Origin: Hydrolagus colliei
Taxonomy: Eukaryota
DNA length: 64,000 nt
NCBI GenBank assembly: GCA_035084275.1
Contig: CM068745.1
Span: 41,912,001 to 41,976,000 of the forward strand
Reading direction: 5' to 3'
Shown here: positions 2,965 through 49,463 of the stretch, piece by piece
Numbering within the stretch: the first letter of the stretch is position 1
How the letters are laid out: the number at the start of each line of letters is the position of its first letter
Notes under the pieces: generated by a model
The model's database searches: none
Told to the model about the DNA's origin: nothing
The model's input: only the letters and a program-made list of their open reading frames with translations
Program-made: the position numbers and the translations under genes

Positions 2965-3064
2965 GTAAATTACTCCCACCAGCCTGCAGGCAGATCGATT
3001 ACCTTTTGTGGTGACCTTTCAGCTAACTAAGTGAAGTAACCTTTGCCTGATTGATCTCTTGCAG

Positions 3065-4225: not shown

Positions 4226-4314
4226 GTGAGAAATCCTACTAAAATACAAAACAAACACATTTGGATTCCATCAGAAAGGGACCTAGTAAACTTGTCACAA
4301 GAAGGAGGGTGCCA

Positions 4315-16206: not shown

Positions 16207-16627
16207 TCACATAAAAGAAAACATTTTCTGCAATGATTGTTTACAGCTTTTTTCCTTTCTGTCACATGGTCTCTCAGATTGTTCATTATATGGATTTTTA
16301 CGTGAATGCAAGCTGGGTCTTGAAGGACTCGTATTCACAAGTACTTGTTTGGTTAATTCAAATAATATTTTGCGAGGTGAGCTATTTTGACTGTGACCAT
16401 TCAACTTTCTATGACGCTCGGGGGATCTGTATTTCAATGTTGCTTTATCAGGAGAATCATTTTTCACTTTTAAAGGAGAAAATCTTTGTTTGATATTCTG
16501 GTTAACGTTATATATCAATTTCACTTCAGCTGGGTCATTTGTGTTATTCAAGTGCTCCGAGGTACCACACTCTATTATTGTTGTCTTGGGATTTGGAGAA
16601 ATGCCTGGATCATTGTTCTGAATGAAA
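16207..16627 (-). CDS. CD200: CD200-like copy A exon 5, long cytoplasmic tail (~140 aa)
   Basis: Strong polypyrimidine acceptor ..ttcattgattacag|; phase 2 matches the TM donor; open frame to TGA; homologous to the copy C tail. Five exons total 1242 nt (413 aa). Confidence 0.8.
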
Positions 16628-16736
16628 CTGTAATCAATGAAGGAAAAGAGGAAAAGTTAAAGTATCAACCAAATGGTAACATAAACTGAATATAAACTAA
16701 GACTAACTGCTTAATTCTCTGAATATCACTCGAATA

Positions 16737-17877
16737 CAGGTAGATCCCGATTAATGAATGCCCGGTTAATGAAGCTTTACTACAACGAGGGTTTCTATTT
16801 GTACCACTTCTCCGCTTAACAAATTTGCTATAATGAATGTTTACACACATTTTAAATCTCGCGGGCTTCTCATGCACAGCTTCTCTCTGGTTGACTCAGC
16901 ACCACACACTCAGACTTTAGCATGCCTCAGTTAAGCAGTGCAGTCCCTCCCATATGGGAGGATCTTAAGCGGCAGGATGCTTCGTGGCTTCAATAATTGT
17001 AAGTCAAGATATGGGGCGGGGGAAATAGAGAGATAGGGGAAAGGGGATAGAAGGGAATGGGGATAGAGAGGAGGGAGCGATAGAGAGGAGGGAGGGATAG
17101 AGAGATGGGGGGATAGAGAGATAGAGAGGAGTGGGGGATAAAGAGATAGGGGGGATAAAGAGATAGAGAGGAGTGGGGGATAAAGAGTTAGGCGGAATAG
17201 AGGGGGATAGATGGGAGTGGGGATAGAGAGGAGGAAGGGATAGAGAGATAGAGAGAAGGTGGGGATAGAATAGAGAGATGGGGGGGAATAGAGAAATAGA
17301 GAGGAGGCAGATAGAGAGACAGAGAGGAGGGCGGGATAGAGAGGGAGGGGAGGGGGGAATAGAGAGCAAGGGGAGGAGGGCATAGAGAGATAGAGATGGA
17401 GGTGGGGATAGAGAGGGTAGGTAGAGAGAAAGAGAGGGGGGTGGAGTGGAAAGAAAGAGAGGAGGGGAGGGGGGGGGGGGTAGAGAGAAAGAGGGGAGGG
17501 GGTAGAGAGAAAGTGAGGAGGGAGAGGAAGAAAGAAGCACGTCCCGAGTCAGGAAATGCCTGGGCTCAGGTTGCGATATTTTGGTACGGTGATTGTGAAG
17601 ACCTGGCCTGGAGCAGGTAGGATTGGCATTTTTGGTCCTGCATTTTTTGTCACATTCCGGATTCCGGAACTCCGGACGTTTGGCTGCTCAACCTGTACAC
17701 CGAAAATGTTAGCCCTAGGAACTGCTAGGAACTAAACTGATTTTAGCGGGGAGGCTCGGATCGGGGCGGCATTTTGGCTGCTGCCAAATACAATACAGTT
17801 AAACTCTCGCTGAACTAAATTTTCGCTTAACGAAGCGTTTAAAGTCCCTAACCCCTTCATTAAGCGGGGTCTGCCTG
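16737..17877. mobile_element. Tc1/mariner (Tigger/pogo-like) non-autonomous element in the last intron of copy A
   Basis: TIRs CAGGTAGATCCCGATTAATGAA and rc CAGGCAGACCCCGCTTAATGAA; TA left flank; absent at the homologous site of copy B (~26995). Confidence 0.75.
17025..17535 (+). repeat. Polypurine (GA/GGGATAGAGA)-rich simple repeat
   Basis: About 500 nt of almost pure purines with sparse T. Confidence 0.9.
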
Positions 17878-19059
17878 TGAATACAACAGAATTAGCCCAT
17901 CATCTAAAGTGTACCATCCCATTTGAGATTCTTTAATTCTGAAATCCAGCAACAGTCATTTGAACTTCCTGATATTTAATCTGCAATGATTTGTAATAGG
18001 AGTTGCGATTTTGCCTGCTTTTAAAAAAAAATATCTTTGGTCTTTTGTCACTTTTCACATGTGTAATGAGATAGCGAACGTTTAACCTGTTGCACTATAT
18101 TTATCAATTTAGATTTCCTAGCAGTTCCTAGCGCGAACATTTTCGGTGCACAGGTTGAGCAGCCAAAAGTCCGGAGTTCCGGAATGTGACAAACATTGCA
18201 GGAATAAAAATGCCAATCCTACCTGCTCCAGGCCAGGTCTTCACAATCACCGTACCAAAATATCAGACAGCTGTGTGACACATGTGGTAACCCATTACCA
18301 TGCTTAATAGTATCCAAACCAAGATAAAATTTCCATGCATCCCACCTACACATGTAATCCCAGAGATAGATTGTTGGAATGGAAAGCGCACACTACCCCT
18401 GGAAGACCACTTCCTGCTAACCTAATTCTGGAAATTTTTAGGAGCAGGTTGGCAAGAACCAAGGCTTGAGGACTCCAGATTGTATGTTGGGGTACTGCTG
18501 GAGTCTAACCAGCTAAAACCGCATAACTTGCCATTTATATTGCAAGTTTTCCCGCTGCTTATCTAGCTAGGATCACTCTACATTTAACAGTTTTGGCTTG
18601 CATGGTGAACAAGAGCTCAGTGGGGTGGCTCCCTGCCTCCAGTGACTGGTCTTCCCTTCCAGGTCCTGCTGATGAGCCAGACTGGCTGTGCTCTGGAATA
18701 CTGTGGACCCACCTGGCTCAGGAACCAGACTACCGACACCGACATTCCATTACCAGGCATGTCACCTTAGTGCCAGTGTGGCTCAAAGGAAACTCCATTT
18801 ATCTCTTCCCCAACAAATCTACCTCACTGCTTGATCCCAGACATCACATATGGGTCAGAAGATGCCTCTCCACTGCATCACCAGAAGCTCAGATACATAA
18901 ATAAAGACTGTTGCCTACAGGTATTGTGTGCCACAAGGTTGCCGTAGATTAGGAGCTTACTGTCCTTGAAGGGAGATAAACATGACCAGAGAGCTCTTCC
19001 TCTTCTAAGCACTATACATCAGGACAGTGTCCAGGCTGAAGTTGGTGACCACCATGACT

Positions 19060-19275
19060 CTGACGTAACAACAAATTACATTTGTATAACACCTTTCACA
19101 TCTGGAGGAGCTCCCAATGTGCTGGATAGTCAGGGATGTGCACCCGGACTGGTGGTTGGGATTAGGAGGGTTGGAGGGCTGGGAGGGCAAGTTTTCGAGG
19201 GTGACCAAACACACTGTCGAAGAGGTGGGTCTTCAGATGGGCAGTGAAGGAGGCAAGGGACTTTGGGATGGAGCT
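19060..19275 (-). mobile_element. L2 3' tail shared by all three paralogues (also ~27790-27995 and ~42185-42400)
   Basis: rc ctccatcccaaagtccctt..aagacccacctcttcgac..gtgaaaggtgttatacaaatgtaatttgttgtt matches other L2 tails. Confidence 0.65.
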
Positions 19276-19330
19276 TCTTTCTTTTGACTTTCATTTTTTG
19301 CAAGGTCCCAAATGTGCTCCATAATCTCCA
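19233..19330 (-). CDS. Copy A candidate alternative last exon (VEIMEHIWDLAKNESQKKEAPSQSPLPPSLPI*)
   Basis: In frame with the second donor CAG|gtaatt at 19496. Frame kept in B and C. Acceptor (gttaatttag) is weak. Confidence 0.35.
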
Positions 19331-19515
19331 CTAAATTAACTGACTTCAATTGAGAGGTACTGGACATGCTTCAGTTGGTCTCAATGCTAAGGATTTGTTC
19401 TTAATTTGTCTCCAGACATATTTAAAGAAATCAAGACATTTGTAGAAAACAATACAAGGAAATATAATATTATCATAAATATAATCGGAAATTACCTGCC
19501 CTGAGGTATACATAC

Positions 19516-19633
19516 CATTTGAAATTATTCCATTTATTTCTCCAGTACCAGATTGCCAGACATACCACCACAATACCAATAATTGTGGCAAATGCAATCC
19601 AAATAGGTGAGTTATCTTTCTGTTGATCCAAAG
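19516..19633 (-). CDS. CD200: CD200-like copy A exon 4, transmembrane
   Basis: ccttgcag| acceptor; IWIAFATIIGIVVVCLAIWYWRNKW; TG|gtatgt phase-2 donor. Confidence 0.85.
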
Positions 19634-20799
19634 CTGCAAGGAAAATATATTATAAAATAAACCCGGAAATGTGGTATTAATCCAGAAAAACCTCACTCAA
19701 TATCAGGGGCAATGATGGATGAAGTTCCACACTGTCTTATAATATGAAACTAAGTTATTTCTAGAAAGATGAATGGAATCTGGACCAACCAAGCTGATAG
19801 GACAAGAAACAGTAGCTTCATTTTAATATATCTACATTACAATGCACTCTGTCAATTAGCAGATATGAAAACCAAACTGCAGATTTGGGAATTATACTAG
19901 CGATAAGGGTATTCTTTGGGAGAATTAGGAATATCCATGTGAAACATTCTACTTGGAGATTTAAGGCTGTGGAGTACAGTACATAATAGGTTTGGGGCCG
20001 TCTTCAGTTGGAACTGTCTGAATTAAAAAATAGGGTTTTGCATTCCACGTTTTATGTTTTTAACGCTGACAATTTATATCATATAGAAGCCACCTGTCCA
20101 AACAACGATCCTCAAAACCACAAATGGAATATTATGTATTATCTTCTTACTGTGCCTTCTGCTTCCCTCCTAACTCCACCCTCTCCAACTCTCCTTCCCC
20201 CCACCCCCACCCAAGGTGCAGCGCCTTGGGACGTCCACCCGACGTGAAAGGCACTTTATAAGTGTAAATTGTTGTTGTTGTTGTTGTCCTCCGGACGTGA
20301 AAGGCTCACAATTAACATTACCAACAATTATGTGAAGATAGTCCGACATTACCTTCACATGATTAAATAAAGGATATAAATATCCCTAATGGAAGGAGTA
20401 TAAAAACCATAGAAGTGCTTTGGCCTAGATTTAGTAGAATATTTCCCACCGTTCACCACTAGAAATCAAGGCTTTTTTCCCTAGAGCCGAGAATCAGAAG
20501 TGACCCAATGCAGTCCCAATCTTTAGTAATGGGAACTGATATGCATGGGGGGTCATCCTATTGTGCATCAACGTAATATAAGCAGGGTCTTCAAGACAGC
20601 TCAAACCGTTTCACAGAATATACGGCAAAGTGAATTGACTATACAGTAATTTGTGGGTGAATGTTGAAGGTTATTGCAGAGAACACAGTTTGCTAAGGTG
20701 GTTTGGGTGAAGAAATCACTAGGGTAGTCTTATTTACTGAAACCATTTCTGCTGTGAGATTCTACAATTCTATGATGAATTATGAATAGGAATACATAC

Positions 20800-21105
20800 A
20801 TGTTGTTTCAAGAAAATCCTCTAAAGTGATTGCCCTTTCCAGAGCTGGATGATTCACCACACAGATCACTTTGGAATTAGCAGCATCAGCTGTAGCCACC
20901 GTCAGATTGCTCGTAATCTTTACTCTTCTGTCGAGGTCCATTGTTGAGGATTGAATGGACAGTACCTTCACATTGCCTGTTGTATTCCACGTGATCACTG
21001 GGGCTGGTCGTCCAGTGGCTGAACAAGTCGCCTCAAAACCATAATAACCACTCCTATTTGGAGCAGTGTCAGTGGGCCTGAACTGTAATGTTGGTTCAGG
21101 TTTCA
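20800..21105 (-). CDS. CD200: CD200-like copy A exon 3, IgC domain
   Basis: TCSATGRPAPVITW..ITSNLTV..VICVVNHP resembles CD200 TCSATARPAPMVFW..VICQVLH. aag| acceptor, T|gtatgt donor. Confidence 0.9.
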
Positions 21106-21687
21106 CTTGCAAGTAAAGAAAAGGAAAAATTTTAAATAATATAATAAATCTGAATCTAAAGTTTGTTACCGGTGTCATTCATTGTAAACAGCACTACAAT
21201 GCCTGCAAAGAAACATACACCATACTACACTTAATTGAGGTATCTTCAGCAGTACAAGTAGTCCAAATCCCTTTCACTGTGAAGAACAATATAACCAACT
21301 TCAATTTATATAGCGCCCTCCATGCCGGATGGCATCTCAGAGCGCTTGAGAGGTCTACAGCTATTAACCAATAGTTGTAGACCTCTGTGATATAGCAGTT
21401 AATCCTCTGTCATATAAACATTGTGGTAATATTTAATATTTTGCATGACAAGACAAACACAAACTTAGCTTCAACTGTTTAGACATGTAATAAGACACCT
21501 AACAACAAATACCAATTTATGCCTGTAATAAGGAGTGTCCTATCAACCTCAGTCCCAAAATAATCGACTTTGCTTATTGAAGTAGCTGCAGACTGATATA
21601 GAACTTCTAATTACCAGCGACTAATCTTAGTAACTCTCATTTCACATACATGTTAAGTACAATTCTTGTTTTTAAATCACTACCTAC

Positions 21688-22029
21688 CATTCACCGAAAG
21701 GCAGGTTTTCCCAACTTTTGCTCCATCTGGGAATGTATTGAAGAGACATTGATAACATCCTTCATCTTCAAACCCCATTCCAAAAAGTGTAATTATGGAC
21801 TCCGTTACTTGTGATGGGATGAAAGCTGCTCTACCTTTAAATGATCCGAATATATTTGATCCATATTTTTCACTAAATGTAGCCATGTTTTTAAATCTTC
21901 TACCACCATTCATCATTTGCCAGGTGACTTGTAGAACCTCATTCGACCCCATTAATGCACATTTGAAGGTGACATTACCCCCTAAAACTGCTTCATGTTT
22001 CGCAGATATTCTCACATTCTGTGCTGAAC
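21688..22029 (-). CDS. CD200: CD200-like copy A exon 2, IgV domain
   Basis: QVTWQ..KNMATFSEKYG..EDEGCYQCLFNTF..GKTCLSV matches CD200 motifs (VTWQK, ENMVTFSENHG, EDEGCYMCLFNTF, GTACLTV). Phase 1-1 splice sites. Confidence 0.9.
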
Positions 22030-22711
22030 CTATAATACAGAGAGAGTATTTTAAACATATGTTAGTTTTAGATTGAAATCTTTGCTAATATTATACAGTA
22101 TAATGTACAAAAAAATATAAGTTTTACCAGACTTCAGTGCAGACAGGAAACAAAAGGGTAGGAAACAATTTTATTTTCCGAGTGTGGTGTAATCATGAAA
22201 ATCTTTGCGTTGATATAATGCAGATAATGTCAAGAACATCTCAAATAGCTTCACAATGTGAACAGTAACTGCCTCCAAGGTGAACCAATTAATCTAGTCC
22301 AGGTCTCCTGTTCAATCCCCATATCTCCTAGAGTTTATCCTCTTCAAATATGTATATAATTCACGAACTACTTTCTATTATTTCCATTTGCTCTTGTGAT
22401 GGAATCCCAAACCTTTTTGAGACTAACCTGACTGCTGAGAGTTCTTAAATTTAAAATAATATTAAAAATAATAATAAACCTTGCAATTTCATTTGGTGCC
22501 TTATCCTGTATTCGAGCTAAAATTCTATCTATCACGTTCTTATAAAAAATATAATCACAGAATATTTTTGCATCGTATTACCAGAGCAAACAATCGCAAT
22601 GTCATATTTCTGAATCGAAGTGTAAGATAATGCAGCTCTAATCTTGTCACACATTTTAAACATCTCCTAATGTTTCCCCTAAACTTTGTAAATAACACAG
22701 TGAAGACTTAC

Positions 22712-22766
22712 ACAAGTGTCCAGTGAAGATTTGCAAGATGATCACTTGGATGCCTAAAGTTTTCAT
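22712..22766 (-). CDS. CD200: CD200-like copy A exon 1, signal peptide MKTLGIQVIILQIFTGHL
   Basis: 55 nt from ATG to T|gtaagt; equivalent exon present in all three copies. Confidence 0.85.
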
Positions 22767-23859
22767 TTTTCCCTGAACACCAGCTGTGAAACTGTGGCAA
22801 AAACCTTTAAACTTCCTCACGTTTTATGTAGATTTGTAATTTGAATTATCCAATGAGAGACATGCATTTTACGAAATTGATTGTCTCAGTCACCAATTGG
22901 TTACAACTGCAGATACTGTACAGGAATTAATGTTTAACCGCTGTGGGTGGGTTTGAATCCAGGATAATTATACTTTGCAATGCAGTTTGGGGTCATTGGG
23001 AAAAGTGAGCTCAAAAGGAGGTTTGAATTCAGTGATAAACCTGTAAATATTCCGTAACTTTCAAAATATGTTGCTCCTCCTTCGTTAAACTGCAGATAAA
23101 CCACGTGGATCTGAAATATGAAAGTGAATGTAAAATGATCCACTTGATGTTCTGTCGCAACAGAAACTTGTTAAAGTTAGTGGATGATCAGACCCAGCTC
23201 TTCCCTCACTCACTCCAGCAATAACTGGGTGTGAGGGACCAATTGAGAACACTATCAGGGACGCTAGCCATATACTGTAGGGCAGCTCTGTATTCCTTCA
23301 ATCTTTTAATCTGAATATTAATTCCAGTTGAGCAGTAGATCAGACATTAACAGCTAAACTCTGGAGTTTACAAACAATAATTTGTGGGAAAACAGTTCAG
23401 GAAGTGGAGTCAGATATCAACACTGTTCACGCCTACTTGGCAATGACATTTGTACAACATGGAAGATCACTGGTTAACAAATCAAATCAAAGGATGCACT
23501 ATTTGAAAGATGCCATTGTAAACTAAAAAAATATATAATCTCCTGATTGATTCCAGCAAACTCGGCATGGAATGAGAATTGAGTCAATGAGCACTTGTTC
23601 CACAAACTCATCTGGAACCAATGCACAATCTATAACTACTTCTTCACCAGAGTAAAGGCATGTCAATGTTGGAAATCAAACTACAAGCCTCAAATCAACC
23701 ATGGCCTTGGAAAAGGTAATTTTTTTAAAGAAAAGACGTTGTAGAAATTGCAAAATTCTTCACATTTTCAAAGTACAGTGAAGGTCCATATATGGAACAA
23801 TCTGAGGCACCATATAACAGAAAGGAAAAGAGTTGACCTCTCTCCCCAACACAATACCC

Positions 23860-24614: not shown

Positions 24615-26100
24615 TTAAATTGTTTCTTATCGGGCATGGCTGATGTACTGAATGAGTACTTTGCATCTGTCTTCACAAAAGAAGAGGATACAGCCAATGC
24701 TATAGTATCAGAGGAGAGGGTAGAAGGAATAGATAGGATAAATGTAAACAGAGAGGAATTACAAAACGTTTGACGGTGCACAAGGTAGATAAGTTGTCCA
24801 GTCCGGATGGGATACTAAGGAAAGTACGGGTGAAAATAGCAGAGGCTCTGGCCACAATCTTTCAATCTCCCTTGCACAGGGATTTTGCCAGAGGACTGGA
24901 AGTTTGCTAATGTTACTCCCCTGTACAAAAAGGGGCAGAAGGACAAACCTGGAAACTACTGGCCAATCAGCCTAACCAGCAGGATGGAAACTTCTAGAGA
25001 CTATAATCGGGGACAAGACAGATCTTCACTTAGAAAGATATTGGTTAATAAAGGACAGACAGCATGGATTTGTTAAAGGTAAATCTTCTCTGACAAATCT
25101 GATAGAGTTTTTTGATGAGGTAACAGAAAGGGTGGATGAGGGTAGTGAAGTTGATGTAGTTTATATGGACTTTCAAAAGGCATTTAACAAAGTGCCACAT
25201 AAAAGGCTTATAAAGAAAATAGAAGCCTACAATGTTAAAGAGACAATGATAACATGGATCCAGAACTGGCTGGGAGACAGAAAGCAGGGAGTTGTGGTGA
25301 ATGGCTGTTTTTCTGACTGGAGGGAAGTGTACAGTTGTATCCCCCAGGGATTGGTATAGGGACCACTGTTCTTTTTAATTTACATTAATGACCCGGACTT
25401 GGGTACAGGAAATACCATTTCCAAGTTTGCTGATGACATAAAGTTAGGAAAAATAGTAAATAGTGAGAAGGATAGTAGCCATCTACAGGAAGATATAGAC
25501 AGAATGGTAGAACGGGCAAACAAATGGCAGATTAAGTTTAATGTGGAGAAATGTTAGGTAATGCATTTTGGAAGGAAGAATGAGGAGAGGCAATATAGGC
25601 TGGTACTTACTTAGGTAGTGCAATTTTAACGGGTGTGACAGAACAGTGAGACCTGGCTGTTTGTGTAAGTACTGTGTACCTACAATTACAGTAAGTACAG
25701 TACTGTGTTCAATTCTGGTCACCACACTTTAGGAAGGATGTTAAGGCATTGGAAAAGGTGCAGAGGAGATTTACCAGGATGGTACCAGGAATGAGGGACT
25801 TCAGTTATGAATAAAGGCTAGAGAGGCTAGGTTTATTCTCATTGGAGCAGAGATGGTTACAAGGAGACCTAATAGAGTTTGTCAAGATCATGAGGGGGAT
25901 TCGATAGGGAAAACAAGGAAAAACTATTTCCACTGGTGGGTGTGTCAGTGACCCGAGGTCATAGATTTAAAATAGTTTCCAAAAGAAGCAGAGGGGACAT
26001 GAGGAGAAATGTTTTCACTCGGTGAGTTGTTCGACTCTGGAATGCATTGCCTGAAAAGATGGTGGAAGCCAATTCGATAACAACTTTTAAAACAGAGGTA
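24615..26100 (+). mobile_element. CR1 LINE ORF2 (reverse transcriptase) fragment, degenerate
   Basis: PEDWKFANVTPLYKKG and DEGSEVDVVYMDFQKAFNKVPH motifs; FADD-encoding tttgctgatgac; stops and frameshifts. Confidence 0.9.
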
Positions 26101-26756
26101 GACGTTTAGTTGGCTAGCACTTGTTCATGCATTCATCACATCAAGGCTCGACTATGGGAACTCTCTCCTCACTGGACATGGCATGAATGTGGTGTAGAAA
26201 ATATATTTGAGTGTCAAACAAGGCGCCAAGGCTCAGCACTGGCTCAGTGAGGTGCAATGTGCATCCTGAGACGGTAATGCTTTTTCTTGGAAAATATATA
26301 TTTATTGATCAACATATTTGGTATCGAAGAAATACAAATAAAACAACATCTTCTTTTCCATTTTCCAGATACAGAACAGCATTATGTTGTTGATAAGAAT
26401 TAGGTATGGACATATCTTCCCCACACACAGGTTATGTACAGATTTTTCAGAGGATACTCCCTTTAAAACCGTTGGCAGTAGCCACCTGTGTGCACTACAC
26501 CTTGATAAGATCACTTGCAACTTTCGGAAGAGGCCCCGATGTGCACCGTACACGCACAGGTTGATCGTTCATACATTTTCAGGACTCACTTTGGATATAT
26601 GTCAAGCGTCCTTCACAGGTACACTCCAGGTGGATTTTTCTGTGAGAGCCCAGGAATAGGCAGAGTGTCGTGACAGTGGGTCCCTCTTTCAATGTTACTT
26701 TCTCGGGGGAGTCATTTTTCACTTTTAAAGGAGAAAATCTTTGTTTGATATTCTGG

Positions 26757-26889
26757 TTAACATGAGATATCTTTCTCTTTGGCTGGATCATTTTGCTTAT
26801 TCAAGGGCTCCAATGTACTACTCTCTACTGTTGTTGTTGTTGTTGACTTGGGATTTGGAGGAATGCCTGGATCATTGTTCTTAATCAAA
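26757..26889 (-). CDS. CD200: CD200-like copy B exon 5, truncated tail (LIKNNDPGIPPNPKSTTTTTVESSTLEPLNKQNDPAKEKDISC*)
   Basis: Acceptor conserved; a net 2-nt deletion versus A gives TAA at 26759-26757. Total 954 nt (317 aa). Confidence 0.7.
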
Positions 26890-28236: not shown

Positions 28237-28354
28237 CATTTGAAATTATTCCATTTATTTATCCAGTACCAGATTGCCAGGCATACCACCACTATACCAA
28301 TAATTGTGGCAAATGCAATCCAAATAGGTGAATTATCTTTCTGTTGATCCAAAG
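28237..28354 (-). CDS. CD200: CD200-like copy B exon 4, transmembrane
   Basis: ttacag| acceptor; IWIAFATIIGIVVVCLAIWYWINKW; TG|gtatgt donor. Confidence 0.83.
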
Positions 28355-29527
28355 CTGTAAGTAAATGTTGGAAACCATATTATAAAATAAACTTTGAAAT
28401 GTGGTTATAATCCAGAAAAACCTCACTCAATATCAGGGGCAATGATCGATGAAGTTCCTCACTGTCTTGTAATATGAAACTAAGTTGTTTCTCAAAAGAT
28501 GGATGGATTCTGGACCAACCAAGCTGATAGGATAAGAAACAGTAGCTTCATTTTAATGTATCTATGGAATGAAACTCTGTCAATTAGCAGTTATGAAAAC
28601 CAAACTGCAGATTTGGGAATTATACTGGTGACAAGGGTGTTCTTTGGGAGAAGGAGGAATATTCATGTGAAAATTTCCTCTTGGAGATTTAAGGCTGTGG
28701 AGTACAGTACATAATAAGTTTTAGGCCGTCTTCAGTTGGAACTGCCTGAATTAAAAAATAGGGTTTTGCATTCCAAGTTTTCTGTTTTTAATGTTGACAA
28801 TTTATATCATACAGAAGCCACTTGTCCCAATAACAATCCTCAAGACTACAGATGGAATATTATATATTATACTGAATATATATCATCTCCAACCATGCCT
28901 TCTGCTCCCCTCCAAACTCCACCCTCTCCTACTCTCCTTCCCCCTAACCCGAATGCCCCCCCTTCCCCACCACCCCCCGGCCCCTGCTCGAGTTCCGACC
29001 TAACTGTTCAGCACCATGGGACGTCCTCCCAACATGAAAGGAGCTCTAAAAATGTAATTTTGTTGTTGTTATTGTATATCTACCTTCACATAATTAAATA
29101 AAGGATATAAATATCCCTAATAGAAGGAGTATAAAAACCATACAAATGCATTCGCATAGATTCAGTAGAATATTTCCCACCGTTCACCGTTAGAAATTAA
29201 GGCCTTTTTTCACAAAAAAGCCGAGACTCACAAGTGACCCAATGGAGATCTTTAGTAATGGGAGCTGATATGCATGGGGGTCATCCTATTGTGCATCAAT
29301 GTAATGTAAGCGGGGTCTTCGAGACAGCTCAAATTGTTTCACAGAATATACTGTAAAGTTAATTGACTTTATAGTATTTTGTGGGTGGATGTTGAAGATT
29401 ATTGCAGAGAACACAGTTTGCTAAGGTGGTTCAGGTGGAGAAATCAGTACAGTAGTCTTGTTGATTGAAAGCATTTCTGCTATAAGATTCTACAATTCTA
29501 TGATGAATTATGAATAGGAATACATAC

Positions 29528-29833
29528 ATGTTGTTTTAAGAAAATCCTCTAAAGTGATTTCCCTTTCCAGAGCTGGATGATTCACCACACAGATCACTTT
29601 GGAATTAGCAGCATCAGCTGTAGCCACCGTCAGATTGCTCGTAATCTTTACTCTTCTGTCGAGGTCCATTGTTGAGGATTGAATGGACAGTACCTTCACA
29701 TTGCCCGTTGTATTCCACGTGATCACTGGGGCTGGTCGTCCAGTGGCTGAACAAGTCGTCTCAAAACCATAATAACCACTTCTATTTGGAGCAGTGTCAG
29801 TGGGACTGGACTGTAATGTTGGTTCAGGTTTCA
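29528..29833 (-). CDS. CD200: CD200-like copy B exon 3, IgC domain
   Basis: ORF 29508..29903; 306 nt, near-identical to copy A. Confidence 0.88.
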
Positions 29834-30710
29834 CTTGCAAATAAAAAGGAAAAATGTTAAATAATATAATAAATCTGAATCTAAAGTTTGTTACCGGTGT
29901 CATTCATTGTAAACAGCACTACAATGCCTGCAAAGAAACATACACCATACTACACTTAATTGAGGTATCTTCAGCAGTACAAGTAGTCCAAATCCCTTTC
30001 GCTGTGGAGAACAATATAACCAACTTCTGTAGACCTCTGTGATATAGCAGTTAATCCTCTTTAATATAAACATTCTGGTAATATTTACTATTTCGCATCA
30101 GAAGACAAACACAAACTTAGCTTCAACTGTTTAGACATGTAATAGACACCTAACAACAAATAACAATTCATGCTTGTAACAAAATACAGAATATACTGTA
30201 AAGTTAATTGACTTTATAGTATTTTGTGGGTGGATGTTGAAGATTATTGCAGAGAACACAGTTTGCTAAGGTGGTTCAGGTGGAGAAATCAGTACAGTAG
30301 TCTTGTTGATTGAAAGCATTTCTGCTATAAGATTCTACAATTCTATGATGAATTATGAATAGGAATACATACATGTTGTTTTAAGAAAATCCTCTAAAGT
30401 GACCTCTGTAGACCTCTGTGATATAGCAGTTAATCCTCTTTGATATAAACATTCTGGTAATATTTACTATTTCGCATCAGAAGACAAACACAAACTTAGC
30501 TTCAACTGTTTAGACATGTAATAGACACCTAACAACAAATAACAATTCATGCTTGTAACAAAAGGAGTGTCACATCAACCTCAAAATAATCCACTTCGGT
30601 TATTGAAGTACCTGCAGATTGATATAGCACTTCTAACTACCAGCGATTAATCTTAGCAACTTTCATTTCAAATAGATATTAAACACTATTTTTTAAAAAT
30701 CAGCACCTAC

Positions 30711-31052
30711 CATACACCGAAAGGTAGGTCTTCCCAAACTTTGATCCTTGTAGTAGTAGATTGAAGAGACATTGATAATATCCTTCATCTTCAAACCCCA
30801 CTCCAAAAAGTGTAATTATGGACTCCGTTACTTGTGATGGGATGAAAGCTGCTCTACCTTTAAATGATCCGAATATATTTGATCCATATTTTTCACTAAA
30901 TGTAGCCATGTTTTTAAATCTTCTACCATCATTCATCATTTGCCAGGTGACTTGTAGAACATCATTCGACCCCATTAATGCACATTTGAAGGTGACATTA
31001 CCCCCTAAAACTGCTTCATATTTCACAGATATTCTCACATTCTGTGCTGAAC
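30711..31052 (-). CDS. CD200: CD200-like copy B exon 2, IgV domain (second disulfide lost)
   Basis: ORF 30700..31038; 342-nt exon, same length as A; reads EDEGYYQCLFNLLLQGSKFGKTYLSV. Confidence 0.88.
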
Positions 31053-31747: not shown

Positions 31748-31802
31748 ACAAGTATCCAATGTATATTTGCAAGAAGATTAGGTGGATACCAAAAGTTTTC
31801 AT
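31748..31802 (-). CDS. CD200: CD200-like copy B exon 1, signal peptide MKTFGIHLIFLQIYIGYL
   Basis: 55 nt from ATG to T|gtaagt; homologous to copy A exon 1. Confidence 0.8.
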
Positions 31803-40783: not shown

Positions 40784-41207
40784 TTAAACAACAAATTTTT
40801 CCTGCAATGAACGTTTACAGCTCTTTTCCTTTCTGTCACATGGTGCCTTAGATAAGTCCGGAAATGGACTTTTACGTAAATGCAAACTAGGCGTTGAAGG
40901 ACTTATAGTCACACATATGTGGTGGGTAAATTCACACAATGTTTCGTAAGGTGAGCTATTTCGACTGTGACAGGTTACATTTCTATGATATATAGGAGAT
41001 TTCCCATTCAATGTTACTTTGTCAGGAGAATAATTTTGAACTTTTAAAGGAGAGAATACTTCTTTGATACTCTGGCTAAAACGAGATATAAAGCTTTCTT
41101 CAGCTGGATCTTTTAGGTTATTAAAGTGCTCCAAAATGCCATTCTCTGGTATTGTTGTTGGTGTCTTGGTAATTGGAGGAATACCTGGTCCCTTGTTCCA
41201 AATCAAA
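40784..41207 (-). CDS. CD200: CD200-like copy C exon 5, long cytoplasmic tail
   Basis: ..ctcattgatcacag| acceptor, phase 2; ORF 40784..41206; homologous to the A tail. Total 1239 nt (412 aa). Confidence 0.82.
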
Positions 41208-41616
41208 CTGTGATCAATGAGGGAAGAGAAAAATAGTCAACATATCAATCAAATTATAATATAAGATGAATACAAACTCTGGCTAACTGTCTCATTCTCA
41301 GAATATCTATCGAACAGATACAACAGAATTAGTTCAACATCCAAATGCATCCTCCTATTTGAGGGCATTTATTCTTAAGTCCAGCAACAATTATTCGATC
41401 TCACTGATATTGTTGGAATGCAATGCGCACTCACCCACTGGGGAGATGCATCCTGCTTACCTAATTCTACAAATTTTTAGGAGCAGGTTGGCAAGAGACA
41501 AGGCTTGGGAAATCGAGTGTGCATTTTGGTACTGCTGGATTCTAACCAGCTAAAACTGGTACTGCTGGAGTCTAACCAGCCATAACTTGCCATTGAAATT
41601 GCAAACTTTTCAGTTA

Positions 41617-41704
41617 CCCAGGTAGCAAGCCCATGTGGGGCCCATATGGGCATGGATCAACCCAAATTGGCCCATATGGGGCCCATATGGGCTTGCTACC
41701 TGGT
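41617..41704. mobile_element. Short foldback MITE in the last intron of copy C
   Basis: CCAGGTAGCAAGCCCATGTGGGGCCCATATGGGC is inverted-repeated after a short spacer; TA on both flanks; absent in A and B. Confidence 0.75.
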
Positions 41705-42354
41705 TACTTATATAGCTAGGATCACAAAAGAGTTTTGTCTTGCTTGGTTAATAGGAACTGAGTGGGTTGGCTCCCTGCCTCCAGTGACTGGTCTTCCCTT
41801 CCAGGTCTTGCTGATGAGCCAGCCTGGCTGTGCTCTGGAATACTATGGACCCGCCTGGCTCAGGAACCAGCCTACCGACACTGACATTCCATTACCAGGC
41901 ATGTCACCTTGCTGACAGTGTGGCTCATAGAAAACTCCACTTATCTCCTTCCCAACAAATCCACCTCACTGCTTGATCCTGAACATCACAGATGGGTCGG
42001 GAGACATCACTTGGCTCCATCCCAGGAGCACAGATACATAACTAATGACTGTTGCCTACAGGTATTGTGTGCCACAAGCTTGGCCTGGGACCTTGCTGTC
42101 CTGAAGAACATGACCAGAGTGCTCTTCCCCTTCTCAGCACTATGCTACAGGACATGCTGAAGTTCGTGAGCACCACAATCCCGAGGTAACAACACATTAC
42201 ATTTGCACAGCTCGTTTCACATTTGTAAGATGTCTCAAATGTACTGGAGAGACAGAGATCCGCATTCAGTCTGGTAGTTGGGATTAGTTGGTTTGGAGGG
42301 CTTGGCGGGTAAATATCGAAGGGTGACCTAAAGCACAATTGAAGAGGGGGGTTT

Positions 42355-42458
42355 TCAGATGGGCAGTGAAGGAGACAAGGGACTTTGGGATGGAGATTCT
42401 TTTTTGAGAGTTTTGATTTCCTTTTTTGCAAGGTCCCAAGTACAATCCCTAATCTCCA
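42355..42458 (-). CDS. Copy C candidate alternative last exon (VEIRDCTWDLAKKEIKTLKKESPSQSPLSPSLPI*)
   Basis: Homologue of the A and B exons with a frame-preserving +6 nt; second donor CAG|gtaatt at 42603. Confidence 0.35.
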
Positions 42459-42622
42459 CTAAATTAACTGATTTCAATTGAGAGGTCCTGGACATGCTTC
42501 AGTTGCTCTCAATGCTGAGGATTTGTTCTCAATTTGTTTAGATATTTTAAAGGAAGCAAGACATTTGTACAAAGCAATATAAGGAAATATAACAGAAATT
42601 ACCTGCCCTGCGGAATACATAC

Positions 42623-42737
42623 CTTTTGAAATCATTCAATTTATTTCTCCAATTCCAGATCACCAGACATACCACTACTATAATAAGTATGGCAAAAGGA
42701 ATCAAAATAGGTAATTTCATTCTCCATTGATCTGAAG
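42623..42737 (-). CDS. CD200: CD200-like copy C exon 4, transmembrane
   Basis: LPILIPFAILIIVVVCLVIWNWRNK (ORF 42547..42771); AG|gtatgt phase-2 donor. Confidence 0.85.
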
Positions 42738-43730
42738 CTGTAAGTAAAATATTGGAAAACGTATTATACAATAAACCTGGAAATGTGGCATATTACTGCA
42801 CTTGGCTGCATCAATAACTAGTTGATAAAAGATAACAATCAATAGAAAAATCTCACTCAGTATGAGGAGCAATGATGGATGAATTTCCACACCATTTTGT
42901 AATATGATATTAAGTGTTTCCAGAAACATGTATGGCATTTGGACCAACCAAGCTTATATGCCAAGAAATAGCAAATTAATTTTTATGTATTTATGCAATG
43001 AAACTAAGTCCATTAGCAGATATGAACCAAAATTCTGCAGATTTGAGAATTCTACTGGTCGAAAGAGTGTTCTTTGGGAGAATTAGGAAAATCCAAGTGA
43101 ATTGGCTTGATGGAAAAATAGTGTTTTGTATTTTTAAATGTTAACCATTTATATTATACAGAAGCGACTTGTCCCAATAGTAATCCTCAAGACCACAGAT
43201 AGAATATTATGTATACATTTACATGAATAATTAAAGAATATAAATATCCTTAACAGAAGGAATATAAAATCCATAGAAATGCTTCATAGAAATGAATCCA
43301 TAGATCCATTAGGATGTTCCCTACCGTTCACTGTTAGAATTAAAGGCATTTTCATTAGAGCAAATGCTCATAAGTGACCCAATAGAGATCTTTTGTACTG
43401 TGAACTGATATGAAAGGGGACTCATCCCATTTGGCATGAATGTAGTTGAAGCATGCTCCATAAGTTCTTTAAAAATTAATTTGATAGATTCCAAAAGAGA
43501 AGGAATAATAATAATATCACATTGCTTTATCTAGTCTTCAAGACAGCTCAAACAGTTTCACAGAATAATGACTGACTATATTTTGTGGGTGAATATTAAA
43601 AGTTATTGGAACAAACAAGAGTTTGATAATGTTCAGGTGGAGAAAATCACCAGGGTAGACTTGTTGGCTGAAAGTATTTCCGCAGTAACATAGCACAATT
43701 CTATGATGAATTATGAACAGGAATACATAC

Positions 43731-44036
43731 ATGTTGTTTTAAGAAAATCCTCTAAAATGATTGCCTTTTCCAGAGCTGGGTGTTTCACCACACAGATCAC
43801 TTTACAATCAGCAGCATCAGTTGTAGCCACCGTCAGATTGCTTGTGATCTTTACTCTTCCGTCGAGCACCATTGTTGAGGATTGGGTGGACAGTACCTTC
43901 ACATTGCCCATTGTATCCCACATGATCACTGGGGCTGGTCGTCCAGTGGCTGAACAAGTCGCCACAAAACCATGATAACCATTTTTGTTTGCAGCAGCGT
44001 CAATGGGACTGAACTGTAGAATTGGTTCAGGCATCA
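43731..44036 (-). CDS. CD200: CD200-like copy C exon 3, IgC domain
   Basis: ORF 43711..44109; TCSATGRPAPVIMW..VICVVKHP; 306 nt. Confidence 0.88.
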
Positions 44037-44600
44037 CTTGTGATGGAAGAAAAGGAAAAATGGTAAATAATATAATAAATCTGAATCTATCATTTGTTAC
44101 TGTTGTCATTCATTGTTGGTATCACTAAAAAACCTGTAAAGAAACATACACCATTTTATACTTTACTGAGACATTGTAAGCAATATGGGATGTCAAATCC
44201 CTTTCACATTGTGAAGAACCATCAGCTGTAAATCTCTGTGATATAGCAGTTAATGTTCTTTGATATAAATTCTTTAAAATTTTAATTTTTACATAAATTT
44301 GATATATATTGTGGTAATAGTTAATATTTTGCATAACAAGATACAACCACAAAGTTAGCTTCAACTATTTAGACATATAAGAGACGCTTAACAGCAAATA
44401 CCAATTCTTGCCCATATCAAAAAGTGGGTCACGTCAACCTCAGTCCCCAAATAATCCACTTTTCCCTATTGAAGTACCTACAGATTGATATAGCACTTCT
44501 AATTACCAGCAATCAATATTAGCAACTCTCATTTAAAATAGATATTAAACACAATTCTTCATATTTGTTCACATTCATATTTTTTAAAATCAGCACCTAC

Positions 44601-44939
44601 CATGCACTGAAAGGCAAGTCTTCCCAAATTTTGTTCCATCTGGGAATGTATTGAAAAGACATCGATAACATCCTTCATCTTCAAACCTCAATTCAGAAAG
44701 ATTAATTATGGACTCCGTTACTTCTGATGGGATGAAAGTTGCTCTACCTTCAAATGATCCAACTATATTTGATCCATATGTTTTACTAAAAGTAGCTATG
44801 TTTTTTTCAGAATGACCATTTAACTTTTGCCAGGTAACTTGCAAAACGTTGTCTGACCCCATTAATGCACATTTGATGGTAACATTACCCCCTAAAATCG
44901 CTTCGTGATTTGCAAGTATTTTGACTTCCTGTGCTGAAC
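44601..44939 (-). CDS. CD200: CD200-like copy C exon 2, IgV domain
   Basis: QVTWQKLNGHSEKNIATFSKTYG..EDEGCYRCLFNTFPDG..GKTCLSV; 339 nt, phase 1-1. Confidence 0.9.
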
Positions 44940-45304
44940 CTGTAACACAAAGAAAGTATTCTGAACATACATTCTTTTCAGATTAAAATCTGTGCTCATT
45001 TTATACAGTACTGTACTTTAAAATAATAACTTTTGCTAGACTTGGGTGAACACAAGAAACAAAAGTGTAGGAAACAAATTTATTTTCCGACCGTAGCGCA
45101 ATCCTACAAATCCTTGCATTGATATAGCGTTGTTCTTGATTTATATCAAATAACTTCATAGTACGAGCAGTAACTGTCTCCAAGGTGAACCGACTGATCG
45201 AATTCAGGTCTCCTGTTCAATTCCCATATCTCTAAGTATTTATCCTCCTGCGATATCAATATAATCCATGAACACGTATTTGGTCACAAATTATATCCCG
45301 ACCA

Positions 45305-46510
45305 TCTGTGGCCAGCGCTCCCTCTGCCTCCTTGACCTATCCGCCGCCTTCAACACTGTGGACAACTCAATTCTCCTCCACCGACTCTCCTCCCACCCCA
45401 ACCTTCAATGGTTTTCCTCCAGGCCCCACGTCGTCTCGGGCGGCGTTCCTCAGAGTTCTGTCCTTGATCTCCTCCTATTCACCCTCTGCATGCTCCATCT
45501 TGGTGACATCATCCGCAGATATGGGGTAAATTTCCACATGTACGCGAATAACACCCAACTCTAACTTTCCACTTCCACCCTCAACTCAAGGACTAACGGC
45601 GTCTTTCCTGGCTGCCTGCCATCGACTCCTAGATGAGACAACGTTCTCGAGTTGAATGTCCGCAAGACTGAGGCCCTCCTGATTGGCTCGCGTCAGTGCC
45701 TCCACACCTCAGGTGCTGACAGCATCAGCATCCAAGGCTACACTCTCTACCTCTCAAAGCCAGTCAGGAATCTGGACTTCTTGTTTGACCCTGAATAGTC
45801 CTTCCTACCCCATATCCCCGCCATGACCAGTACTATCTTCCATTACCTTCACAACATCGCCAGACTCCACCACTGCCTCAACCCTCAGGCTGCCGAAATT
45901 CTAGTCCACACATTTCTCACATCAAGGTGCATCTATGGAAACTCCCTCCTCGTCGGCTTTTCTGGCTCTTCCCTTCACAAGCGGCAGATCTTCCAGAACT
46001 CTACAGCTCACGTCCTCTCCCGCACCAAGCTCCGCGACCACAACACTCCCACCCTTGCCTGGCTCCACTGGCTCCGCATCCGCCAGCGAATCGAATTCAA
46101 GATCTTCATCCTCACTTTCAAGGCTATTCACAGCCTTGCCTCCTACCTTACTGACCTGCTGTCCCCCTATGAAACTGCATGCCCCACTCCATTCAGCGGG
46201 CTCTGGTCTGCTCCATGTCCCCCACCCAGCCCGCCCTACCATTGGCGGAAGGACTTTCAGCCTCTCTGCCCCCATAATCTGGAACTCCATCCCACAGTCC
46301 CTTCGCCTCGCTTCCTCCCTTGCCTTCTTCAAGGTTGGTCCCAAGACCCTCCTCTTCGAGAGTGCTTCTGCTGCCTTCCCAACTCTCTCTCTCCCATCCT
46401 ATCTCTCTCCCACACCCCCTACTCTGCTTGGGTCCCGACCTGACTGTTCATTGCTTTGGGATGGCCTCCCCACATGAAAGGCGCTTTATAAATGTAATTT
46501 TGTTGTTGTT
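45305..46510 (+). mobile_element. L2 fragment in intron 1 of copy C
   Basis: LLDLSAAFNTVD, HMYANNTQL and LHWLRIRQRIEFKIF motifs. Confidence 0.85.
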
Positions 46511-46767
46511 GTTTGCTCTTGCTCTTGGAATCCCACTCTTTTTTGAGACTAGCCTGACCTCTGAGATTGCCCACAAGTATTAATATTATTATTAAATAAA
46601 TAATAATAAATTTAGAATTTGATACTGCATGTTTGAATCATCTCAAATCACTTCAATTAGTTGCTGTGCAAGCGTTTGTGTAAAGCAAGTGTTTTCTGGA
46701 TCGATTTGAGAACCAAATTTAACAAAAACTAAAGTGTTACCTTTTTTCAAAGTATTTACTGAAAACT

Positions 46768-47590
46768 ACAACAACAAAATTACAGCGCCTTTCACGTCGA
46801 GAGGATGTCCCAAGCCACTGAACAGTCAAGGGTCAGGACCCGAGCATGGTGGGGTGTGGGGGGCCAAGGTTGGGATGAGTGAGGGCAGAGAGGTAGAACG
46901 GCGACTGAAGGAACGGTGAAAGAGAAGGGTCTTGAGACCAGTCTTGAAGGAGGTAAGCAAGGAAGCAAGTTGAAGGGATTGTGGGATGGAGTTCCAAATT
47001 GTAGGGGGAAGAGAGGCTGAAAGCCTGGCCGCCAATGGTAGAGTGGGAGACATGAAGCAGGCTGGAGCATGCTGAATGGTGGGAGTGGACAGGTTGTTAG
47101 GGAGTCAGCAGGTCAGTGAGGTGGGAGGAGTCAAAGCCTTGGAGGGCCTTGAAGGTGAGGACAAGGATCTTGCATTTAATCCTCTGAGGAATGGAGAACC
47201 AGGGGACCTGGGCAAGGGTGGAGGTGATGAAGTCATGGACTCTAGTGTGGGAAAGGACACGAGCTGCAGAGTTTAGATGATCTGTGGAGCTTATGGAGGA
47301 AAGAGTTGGGAGGCCGACAAGGAGGAAGTTGCCGTAGTCGAGCCTTGAGGTGACAAGGGTGTAAGGGTTTGAGCGGTCGGAGAGTTGAGGTAGTGATCGA
47401 GACGAGTTATATTGCTGAGGTGGTGGAAGGCAGTGCTGGTCATGGCACGGATATGTAGGAGGAAGGATAGCTTAGGATCAAACATTCCACCCAGGTTCCT
47501 GACTGGCTTGGTGAGGTGCAGAGTGCAGCCGTGGATACTGATGCTGCCAGGGCCTGAGGTGCAAAGGCACTGACGAGAGCCTATCGGGAG
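46768..47590 (-). mobile_element. L2 fragment
   Basis: Antisense L2 ORF2 end motifs. Confidence 0.8.
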
Positions 47591-47599
47591 GGCCTCAAT

Positions 47600-48178
47600 T
47601 TTGAATGTCAACAAGACATTCTTGCATCAGGCGCTGGATTCATCAACCTCCATGGTTGCACACTCAACCTCACCAAGCTAGTCAGGAACCTAGGTGGCTT
47701 GATCGACCCTCAACTGTCTTTCCTGCCCCACATCCAAGCAATAACTCGCTCTGCCTTTCCCCACCTCCACAACATTCCCCGACTCCACCACTACCTCTGC
47801 AGCTCGTGTCCTTTATCGTGACCCCATCATTGTTGGCCAACTCCATTGGCTCCCATCAACCAGAGGAACCAATTCAAGATCCTGGTCCTCACATTTAAAG
47901 CCCTCCACAACTTCGCCCACCCTAAATCCATGACCTTCTTTCTCCTTACCAACCTATCCCCCCCTCCGCTCAGTAGGCTCTGGCCTGCTCCACGTTCCCA
48001 ACCCACCCACCCCACTATTGGCGGGTGAGCCTTCAGCCACTCTGCCCCCAACCTCTGGAACTCCGCAGTCCATCTGCCTCACCCCCTTCAAGTCTGGCTT
48101 CCTTCAAGTCTTGGAGCGCTCCGAGATGCCGTTCACCTTGGAGGGCGCTATATAAATCCAAGTTGTTGTTGTTGTTAC
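47600..48178 (+). mobile_element. L2 fragment
   Basis: FKILVLTFKALH..TIGG motif and (gtt)n tail. Confidence 0.8.
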
Positions 48179-49408
48179 TTAACATGTTGGAATGCACTGA
48201 TAGCCACTCACGCTCCCTAATTTTTTATAGCGGGACATCAGTAGTCTGATGTGTTAAGATTTCATCATGAAACTAGTTTGCCAATTACAGTTTCAAGAAA
48301 AGTTGATAAAGTTTGCTTACCCCACATGCTTATGTTTACCTAGCAGTAAGTAGGAATACGGTAATCAATTGATGCGTCGCTATTCTGGGTAATAATTCCT
48401 TAACAAAACAAGAATAAACTGGTGACACAATCAACGACTGTTTGTGGGACACTGCAGTGCGCAATAGACTGCTAAGTTTCACTCACTTTACATATGTTCT
48501 TGAGGCTCTTTGAGATGTCTCGAGGAAGTGCAAGGATTATTATTATTATTTATCAATGTAACTACTCAATGCGATTTAGGTTTAAGCCATTGAATGGGGA
48601 AATGCAGATCATTTTAAATTTCCCGCGTTGGGCTCTCCAATCGGTCGAGTTAAAAAAGCTGTTGCTGAGTACAAATTTGCATTTATAGATGCATTTGACG
48701 TTGGGAGGGCGCCTCACGATGAAATCTCTCAATTCAGCAAACACTTGCTGCAGAATATGTATTCACCCATTCCTTCCTTGTGAAATACATGAACTTTGTT
48801 GAGAACTGTTATTGAGCATTGATACTGCATTGAGAACTGGATAAGGAATAGGAACATCAAGAGATAGGGAAAGACAGTTCCAGAAAATAGGACTGAGATT
48901 AAAGAGTGGATTTGAATAACTGTCAGTAGTGGCATATACAGCTGGGGCTAAAAATGTGTATATCCAGACCAGACCAAGGGCTCCAAATAATATAGATATG
49001 CCACCTAAACATGTGCCTTCTCCCCTCAGAGGGATGCACTCTGCTGATCTAGTTCTTGAAAATATTAGGAGAATGTTGGTAACAGTCAAGGTTTGGGGAT
49101 CCAAGAGTGCACATTTAAACCAGCTGAAAAGGAACAATTATTTTTCAAATTCATTTTCACCTTAAAGGATAACTTGTGTTTTAAAATACTAAAGATTTGC
49201 TAAAGCTTCAATTCCATTACCTTCTTATAAAGATATAATCACAGAATATTTTTGCATCATTTACGAATATCGTATTACCAGAGCAAACAATCGCAATGTC
49301 ATATTTCTGAATCGAAGTGTAAGATAATGCAGCTCTAATCTTGTCACACATTTTAAACATCTCCTAATGTTTCCCCTAAACTTTGTAAATAACACAGTGA
49401 AAACTTAC

Positions 49409-49463
49409 ACAAGTGTCCAGTGAAGATTTGCAAGATGATCACTTGGATGCCTAAAGTTTTCAT
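49409..49463 (-). CDS. CD200: CD200-like copy C exon 1, signal peptide (same peptide as copy A)
   Basis: 55 nt from ATG to T|gtaagt; followed by a ~4.5 kb TE-rich intron 1. Confidence 0.82.

Follow-up and report, generated by a model that had tools for sequence, protein, structure and literature searches.

A CD200-like tandem copy lacking the F-G disulfide cysteines carries these changes in a probably unconverted divergence island and may be decaying under gene conversion

In a 64-kb stretch of genomic DNA (hereafter the window, i.e. the whole of the sequence analyzed), we find three CD200/OX-2-like genes, here called copies A, B, and C. Copy B has lost both cysteines of the extra disulfide that joins the F and G strands of the V domain, and its FG loop has been rewritten. 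These changes begin at a breakpoint within the V exon and belong to a block of old A/B divergence that continues at equal density into the adjoining intron; moreover, the last exon of B is frameshifted and truncated. On balance, and judging from sequence comparison, we lean toward the interpretation that B has been functionally released or is decaying, and that it owes its intact appearance to gene conversion from A.

The three copies were recognized by gene structure, homology, and synteny. A tblastn search with the V-exon translation of copy B returned three CD200-like V exons in the window, all on the minus strand, at 22029-21688 (copy A), 31052-30711 (copy B), and 44939-44601 (copy C). A weak tblastn match to 'CYHCLFN' at 25222-25260 was set aside as chance, all frames there having been read with no Ig exon found. 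Gene models were built from splice sites, reading frames, and homology; the human CD200 sequence served as a lead for locating exons only, and the conclusions rest on database sequences. Copy A (16207..22766, minus strand, 413 aa) and copy C (40784..49463, minus strand, 412 aa) are complete, with signal, V, C2, transmembrane, and tail exons at 22766-22712, 22029-21688, 21105-20800, 19633-19516, and 16627-16207 in A and at 49463-49409, 44939-44601, 44036-43731, 42737-42623, and 41207-40784 in C. The exons of copy B, also on the minus strand, comprise a signal-peptide exon (31748..31802) that is open, encodes MKTFGIHLIFLQIYIGYL plus a split Cys codon and ends in a GTAAGT donor; the V-set exon, with 113 full codons, phase 1 at both ends, an intact AG acceptor and GTAGGT donor, and a Pfam V-set match (E=3.8e-8); a C2-set exon (29528..29833; Pfam C2-set_2, E=5e-10), which is ~2% diverged from that of A and is read as a recently homogenized block; a transmembrane exon (28237..28354); and a last exon that in its present reading spans 26757..26889. 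Each copy has the signal peptide, V-set, C2-set, and single transmembrane helix of the CD200/OX-2 architecture, one exon each, followed by a long last exon, with compatible phases and GT/AG sites, and the phase-1 exons encoding V-set, C2-set, and transmembrane segments are those of CD200 (OX-2; PDB 4BFI; Hatherley et al. 2013, PMC3664923).

The top database relative of these genes is an OX-2-like protein of Callorhinchus milii (71-78% identity), and the best named homologs are OX-2 proteins. In the 32.5-kb C. milii locus (MU249835.1), which contains just one CD200 V exon, an IgV neighbor gene, a single CD200 gene (NP_001279700, 412 aa), and an Arf/Ras-family gene follow one another, and the window is flanked in the same way, with the IgV neighbor gene on one side and the Arf/Ras-family gene on the other. 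The Arf-side flank is matched at 60.3-63.3 kb of the window with 79-84% nucleotide identity; this match (~60328-63278, plus strand) covers the 5' flank and first part of the Arf/Ras-family GTPase gene (419-aa product in C. milii), confirming that synteny also holds at the far end of the CD200 cluster. Because these flanks are common to the window and to C. milii, in which the gene is single, we assign the window to another holocephalan with a triplicated gene; by homology and synteny it is a tandem triplication of a CD200/OX-2-like gene, and CD200 has expanded from one to three copies in a holocephalan lineage. In a protein tree, A and B group together, and the terminal branch of B is six times longer than that of A (0.076 vs 0.012). 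The tree does not date the duplications, since it leaves C, C. milii, and (A,B) in a three-way split. Proteins resembling B were not found in other species in a protein collection that covers one holocephalan gene cluster.

The interval 30711-30790 is the 3' end of the copy B V exon on the minus strand. Here B reads EDEGYYQCLFNLLLQGSKFGKTYLSVY where A and C read EDEGCYQCLFNTFPDG.K.GKTCLSV. In a codon alignment of the V exons of A and B, which contain 19 base differences in all, the encoded residues differ at 14/113 codons (9, 11, 30, 41, 84, 91, 98, 99, 100, 101, 103, 105, 109, and 113). Nine of these 14 lie in the last 23 codons (91-113), a clustering with a hypergeometric P of 1.4e-4, or 0.001 when corrected for window choice and 0.009 when the LLLQ block is taken as one event. 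Codon 91, the F-strand cysteine of the disulfide, is TAT (Tyr) in B (30780-30778, minus strand) and TGT (Cys) in A (21757-21755, minus strand) and C, and codon 109, the G-strand cysteine, is TAC (Tyr) in B (30726-30724, minus strand) and TGC (Cys) in A (21703-21701, minus strand) and C. The codon alignment and the codons as read therefore bear out a preliminary description of this exon, which had reported both TGT>TAT and TGC>TAC losses and the 9/14 differences, including a (CTA)3 run, in the last 23 residues. Between the two cysteine positions, codons 98-101 of B (30759-30748, minus strand) are CTA CTA CTA CAA (LLLQ) in place of ACA TTC CCA GAT (TFPD), i.e. seven base changes within 12 nt that probably represent one or two complex events, and the FG loop is N-L-L-L-Q in B compared with N-T-F-P/L-D in A, C, and C. 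milii, whose single copy thus retains the ancestral motif. Together, TAT/TAC and CTACTACTA mark the B V exon relative to A. A search for a template of the (CTA)3 segment revealed no CTA microsatellite nearby. B keeps the canonical Ig residues, i.e. Cys23, Trp36, Cys94, and the D-x-G-x-Y motif.

The consequences of these replacements can be assessed against the solved structure of mouse CD200, for which the preliminary description was right in invoking an extra V-domain disulfide and a receptor-binding face. In this structure, the exposed F-G strand disulfide is described as 'conserved in CD200 orthologs', residues T95, G97, S98, Q99, and K100 of the FG loop contact CD200R, F96 occupies a hydrophobic pocket of the receptor, and mutation of L92, N94, or F96 destroys CD200R binding (PMC3664923). 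Aligning the V exon of A to chain 4bfi_B with phmmer places both extra cysteines in register, and A and C carry the motif EDEGCY.CLFNTFP.G...GKTCL. What sets B apart from CD200 is the absence of the two F-G cysteines and of the contact residues Thr-Phe-Pro; the Asn-Thr-Phe contact motif (mouse N94, T95, and F96) is absent as such. Because B replaces both cysteines and the equivalents of mouse T95 and F96, its canonical binding to a CD200R-type receptor was very probably altered or lost. A gene for such a receptor is absent from the window. To this extent the earlier proposal of an altered ligand specificity stands, and we infer that B no longer binds a receptor of this type canonically; its other part, selection for a new specificity, is unsupported by the comparisons below.

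Among 200 V domains from the 150 best family representatives, 175 have both F-G cysteines, 16 have neither, and 9 have a single one (Fisher 5e-16); the 16 domains without either cysteine show that disulfide-free relatives exist. At the positions where B has Leu-Leu, an aromatic residue is found in 183/200 and a proline in 172/200 of the related V domains. Nectin/PVR V domains (nectin-3, PDB 5B22) are as close as CD200 by sequence and fold, with phmmer E-values for the A V exon of 8.5e-14 (nectin-3) and 2.2e-13 (CD200) and Foldseek TM-scores for the B model of 0.89 (nectin-3) and 0.85 (CD200 4bfi_B), and neither Foldseek nor the PDB sequence search could separate the V domain into CD200 or nectin. 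Like B, nectins have no F-G disulfide, but their FG turn is still of the aromatic-Pro-x-Gly type (TFPLG), which is gone from B. By sequence and synteny together, the nearest relatives of B are CD200 genes and not nectins. AlphaFold2 modeled the V domain of B as confidently as that of A (pLDDT 90.7 vs 88.2), with the same strand map, an F strand at 90-98 and a G strand at 102-112, and residues 91 and 109 on neighboring strands. This prediction, which had been suggested as a check, proved non-discriminating: AlphaFold2 is insensitive to destabilizing substitutions, the models of A and B come from the same alignment, and stability is not addressed by them.

These observations raise the possibility, which we consider doubtful, that B is an expressed CD200-like ligand in which the disulfide was lost as a compensated pair and the FG loop was rebuilt for an altered binding partner, e.g. 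another CD200R-family member, or to escape a pathogen decoy, with selection blocking overwriting by A. That the changes fall exactly on the receptor-contact loop, that the family V domains mostly have both cysteines or neither and B has lost both, and that B is modeled confidently all speak for such a ligand, although the last of these is weakened by the insensitivity of AlphaFold2. The pattern of divergence along the duplicated unit, however, speaks against it.

The divergence between A and B along this unit is bimodal, with stretches of 0-5% alternating with stretches of 10-20%. Around the V exon, it amounts to 5.6% over the final 339 nt of intron 1 and falls to 1.6% across V codons 1-83; it then rises to 16.5% over the final 91 nt of the V exon and to 19.7% over the first 183 nt of intron 2, before returning to 5.8% over the 121 nt of intron 2 that follow. 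One island of old A/B divergence (30528..30801, minus strand; A 21778-21498) thus runs from V codon ~84 through codon 113 and on into intron 2 for ~190 nt; it is ~280 nt long, 16-20% diverged, and flanked on both sides by sequence that is 2-6% diverged. An excess of change confined to the B binding site was not found when the exon end was compared with the adjoining intron (16.5% vs 19.7%, Fisher p=0.62). The clustering is, therefore, beyond chance within the exon (P=1.4e-4) but not relative to the adjoining intron. A maximum chi-square scan places a breakpoint at A 21736, within the FG-loop codons (permutation p<0.001). Upstream of it, the site patterns among A, B, and C are 8 A-only, 11 B-only, and 110 C-only, and downstream 23 A-only, 29 B-only, and 31 C-only (p=5e-12 for the change; p=1.5e-6 for introns alone). 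With C. milii as outgroup, the upstream block has 48 derived sites common to A and B, 5 A-only, and 7 B-only, and the island has 19 A-only, 20 B-only, 13 C-only, and 7 common to A and B; in the intron part of the island, these numbers are 18, 11, 9, and 6, respectively.

The blocks in which A and B differ by 0-3% indicate recent gene conversion as judged from their identity; they take in the greater part of the V exon together with ~370 nt of intron 1, and the C2 exon together with ~200 nt of intron 2. The simplest reading of the mosaic would be an old A/B duplication that was later patchily homogenized by gene conversion, with one tract ending inside the V exon. A second case lies at the 5' end of A, where the promoter and signal exon (22572-23685) match the region upstream of C (49269-50400) at 95.6% identity, and the two signal exons are identical, compared with ~79-82% identity between A and C elsewhere; this block likewise points to a 5' end that was recently converted or duplicated, and in C it is set off from the V exon by ~4 kb of repeat-rich insert (45273-49269). 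Because the identity of the A and C 5' ends is far above that of the remainder, conversion has clearly been active in the cluster. High-divergence islands like that at the V-exon end also occur in purely intronic parts of the unit, and so this island needs no selective explanation. A conversion boundary explains the localization of the B changes without an adaptive change of specificity, and the argument of the preliminary description from localized change to selection does not survive the breakpoint at which the cluster starts or the equal density with which it runs into intron 2. A conversion-resistant island can, nevertheless, also be the footprint of selection for divergence.

Abrupt boundaries and active conversion, as in the 95.6% A/C block against ~80% identity elsewhere, would also fit an island copied into B, or A, from a further CD200-like paralog or pseudogene outside the window. 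We regard this as improbable. The 64-kb window holds three V exons only and no donor, and a second copy of CTACTACTACAAGG was not found in it when up to 2 mismatches were allowed; the C. milii locus has one gene only; and the similar numbers of A-only, B-only, and C-only changes in the intron part of the island, with a weak common stem of A and B, are those of an old split in place.

The rates of change within the island differ between the copies. In its exon part (91 bases), private changes number 10 in B, 2 in A, and 5 in C, and in its intron part (183 bases) 15 in B, 21 in A, and 15 in C. B has changed at the same rate in exon and intron (10/91 vs 15/183, p=0.51), whereas A has changed more slowly in the exon (2/91 vs 21/183, p=0.0095), and between A and C. 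milii 6/91 exonic and 49/189 intronic bases differ. Seven of the 10 B-private exonic bases belong to the (CTA)3-CAA block, i.e. a single low-complexity event, without which the exon rate of B does not exceed its intron rate. The A-B dN/dS in the V 3' end is 1.1. Omega between A and C is 0.35 in the F-G hairpin compared with 0.6-0.9 in the other coding regions that differ between them, and by this measure no part of the ligand, which otherwise evolves fast, is more constrained than the hairpin.

When exons 1-4 are counted, signal exon included, the changes that map to B by parsimony are 22 nonsynonymous and 5 synonymous, compared with 3 and 4 for A. Polarization in the signal exon is unreliable because A equals C there by recent conversion and B shares LIFLQ with C. 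milii; seven nonsynonymous changes counted there for B were, therefore, dropped as evidence, not all of them being derived in B. Without the signal exon, the ratio in B is 15:2, with few changes involved. The resulting omega values are ~1.3-2.2 for B and ~0.2 for A. With three paralogs and one outgroup, omega in B does not significantly exceed 1 in binomial tests (p=0.23 for 15/17; p=0.42 for 22/27), and these tests give the proposal of the preliminary description no support. An expressed ligand is thus disfavored by the clustering that extends into the intron, by the comparable islands in pure intron, by an exon rate equal to the intron rate, by the absence of a significant excess of omega, and by the share of the (CTA)3 event in the exon-end changes.

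Three further lines of evidence point the other way. First, in the V 5' and C2 blocks, both recently converted, strict parsimony against C gives B 5 nonsynonymous and 0 synonymous changes, plus an ambiguous E30D, and the canonical Ig residues are kept. Second, none of exons 1-4 is interrupted in B, and their splice sites are good; under neutrality, the probability that these exons would have escaped a frameshift is 0.04-0.11, as estimated from the intronic ratio of frameshifting indels to substitutions (0.08) scaled to the exonic substitutions. Third, the chance loss of both partners of one disulfide is roughly 0.03-0.04, an estimate made post hoc from the B-lineage rate, and the paired loss is, therefore, weak evidence for continued selection on folding, under which the second cysteine loss may have been selected. 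C>T (22) and G>A (20) are the commonest substitutions on the B lineage, and because G>A is among these two classes, both Cys>Tyr changes are of the expected mutational kind.

The preliminary description had missed the lesions in the last exon of B. Relative to A, this exon has grown by 9 nt in an (ACA)n tract at 26846-26826 and has lost 2 nt between 26772 and 26771, a deletion that shifts the frame into a TAA stop at 26759-26757, cutting the tail to 44 residues and the protein to 317 aa compared with 413 aa for A and 412 aa for C. An out-of-frame remnant of the tail exon follows (26687..26756, minus strand), and the homology of B to A and C ends at ~26687, so that B lacks half of this exon on its 3' side as well as the 3' flank common to A and C; by this comparison B is a 3'-truncated duplicate. 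With a frame lesion and a truncation relative to its parent gene, B has one of the marks by which pseudogenes are recognized, in the last exon only; its lesions are confined to that exon, and the four ectodomain and membrane-anchor exons contain no stop or frameshift. Mammalian CD200 works with a short tail, and even where the gene is intact, change in the tail exon is close to neutral (omega 0.9-1.4 among A, C, and C. milii). Both facts weaken the truncated tail as proof of lost function, and the truncation proves little about the function of B, although it still counts against an expressed ligand.

The intact tail exons lie at 16627-16207 in A, 41207-40784 in C, and 22098-22529 in C. milii (sequence L002). 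The cytoplasmic tail of these chimaera genes, at ~140 codons, differs from the short mammalian tail, as do the three tandem copies from the one of CD200; its open frame is nearly constant in length (139-143 codons in A, C, and C. milii) and contains the conserved patches IKQRFSP, HSQNSSP, and EKSCK, and Pfam finds nothing in it.

Taken together, we favor a scenario in which A and B would be old duplicates partly homogenized by gene conversion, and in which the last ~30 V codons of B would lie in an unconverted island extending into intron 2. In this island, the F-G hairpin of A, C, and the C. milii gene would have remained under purifying selection while B drifted at the neutral rate, losing both F-G cysteines through G>A transitions, and a complex (CTA)3 event would have replaced its Thr-Phe-Pro-Asp contact motif; B would also have become 3'-truncated and frameshifted in the tail exon, and its intact exons 1-4 would owe much to recent conversion from A. 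We infer that B is a relic or a pseudogene in progress.

Comparison with known systems bears on the same choice. The mouse genes iSEC1 and iSEC2 (Gm609/Gm17783; Kojima et al. 2016, PMC5098219) resemble B in being lineage-specific, diverged tandem duplicates of CD200 beside the parent gene, and as paralogs with a biology of their own they provide a precedent for an expressed B. These proteins retain the two additional cysteines on strands F and G ('a particular feature of CD200'), still bind CD200R, and have lost a C2-domain cysteine (PMC5098219); B is the opposite in that its F-G cysteines are lost. Viral CD200 homologs of herpesviruses and poxviruses (HHV-8 K14/vOX2, rat CMV e127) are likewise diverged CD200 V-C2 proteins, in which the F-G disulfide and most interface residues are conserved and which bind CD200R like the host ligand (PMC3664923); B conserves neither. 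Because iSEC1/2 and the viral homologs all retain the F-G cysteines, a functional B would be unusual, and by the same analogy a decaying B would be ordinary. Unprocessed pseudogenes and conversion-mosaic paralogs of tandem immune clusters resemble B in boundary truncation, frameshift, an omega that in B is near 1 on small counts, and patches overwritten by a functional neighbor beside old degenerate patches; they differ from B, which has no stop or frameshift in its four ectodomain and anchor exons.

If B is decaying and patched by conversion, it would be an ordinary feature of tandem immune-gene clusters, and its main value would be as a caution: under concerted evolution, the boundary of a conversion tract can yield a cluster of amino acid changes at a binding loop, and the adjacent intron should be compared before selection is invoked. 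A functional B would be the first documented case of a CD200-lineage ligand that operates with neither the F-G disulfide nor the Phe contact, and would point to ligand-side diversification in the CD200/CD200R system. A paired-receptor arms race is known for CD200R, and a living B in which the disulfide is dispensed with, the contact hairpin remade, and the gene held apart by selection despite ongoing conversion, which we consider unlikely, would be its ligand-side counterpart, of independent origin in cartilaginous fish.

Finally, several features of the window bear on its assembly or accompany the CD200 cluster. Intron 2 of B contains a local duplication (30028..30402, minus strand) in which 30186-30402 is a 100% copy of 29341-29557, a segment that comprises the final 30 nt of the C2 exon together with its donor and 187 nt of intron 3, and 30023-30184 is 98.8% identical to 30402-30563. 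Intron 2 thereby gains a spare splice donor; the duplication must be of very recent date if it is not an assembly artifact. Between the IgV neighbor gene and the 3' end of A, the interval 7009-11110 (plus strand) repeats part of the CD200 locus a fourth time in inverted orientation, on the strand opposite to A, B, and C and collinear with the promoter, 5'UTR exon, and intron 1 of the C. milii gene (L002 9394-13953). The promoter/first-exon region has its sole match in the window here (7009-7661; L002 9394-10052; 77%), and A, B, and C each keep just ~1 kb of intron-1-like sequence upstream of the signal exon. This copy could be a real rearrangement or an assembly inversion. Tandem-repeat assemblies sometimes create duplications (here of 217 nt at 100% and 162 nt at 98.8% identity) and inverted copies of this kind, as would be expected if B were a chimeric or collapsed mis-assembly whose odd segment is not a real haplotype. 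We hold this to be very improbable: B-specific substitutions extend over the whole 6-kb unit with a coherent phylogenetic pattern relative to A, C, and C. milii, the 19 V-exon base differences, including a 7-base complex change, cannot be read errors, and the window contains no Ns.

The IgV neighbor gene (~2856-4240, plus strand) encodes a single IgV domain and a transmembrane segment (V exon ~3055-3400, TM exon ~4080-4236). Its V domain is without the usual B-strand cysteine, and its sole relative in the protein collection is the uncharacterized C. milii LOC103184824, which shares 54% identity and occupies the same syntenic position beside CD200. An open reading frame fragment of a reverse transcriptase is found at 53614-54003 (plus strand; Pfam RVT_1, E=4e-10), and dispersed repeat families lie between and around the gene copies (e.g. 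4768-5041, 38839-39118, and 45669-47597), some of which are also present in the C. milii locus.
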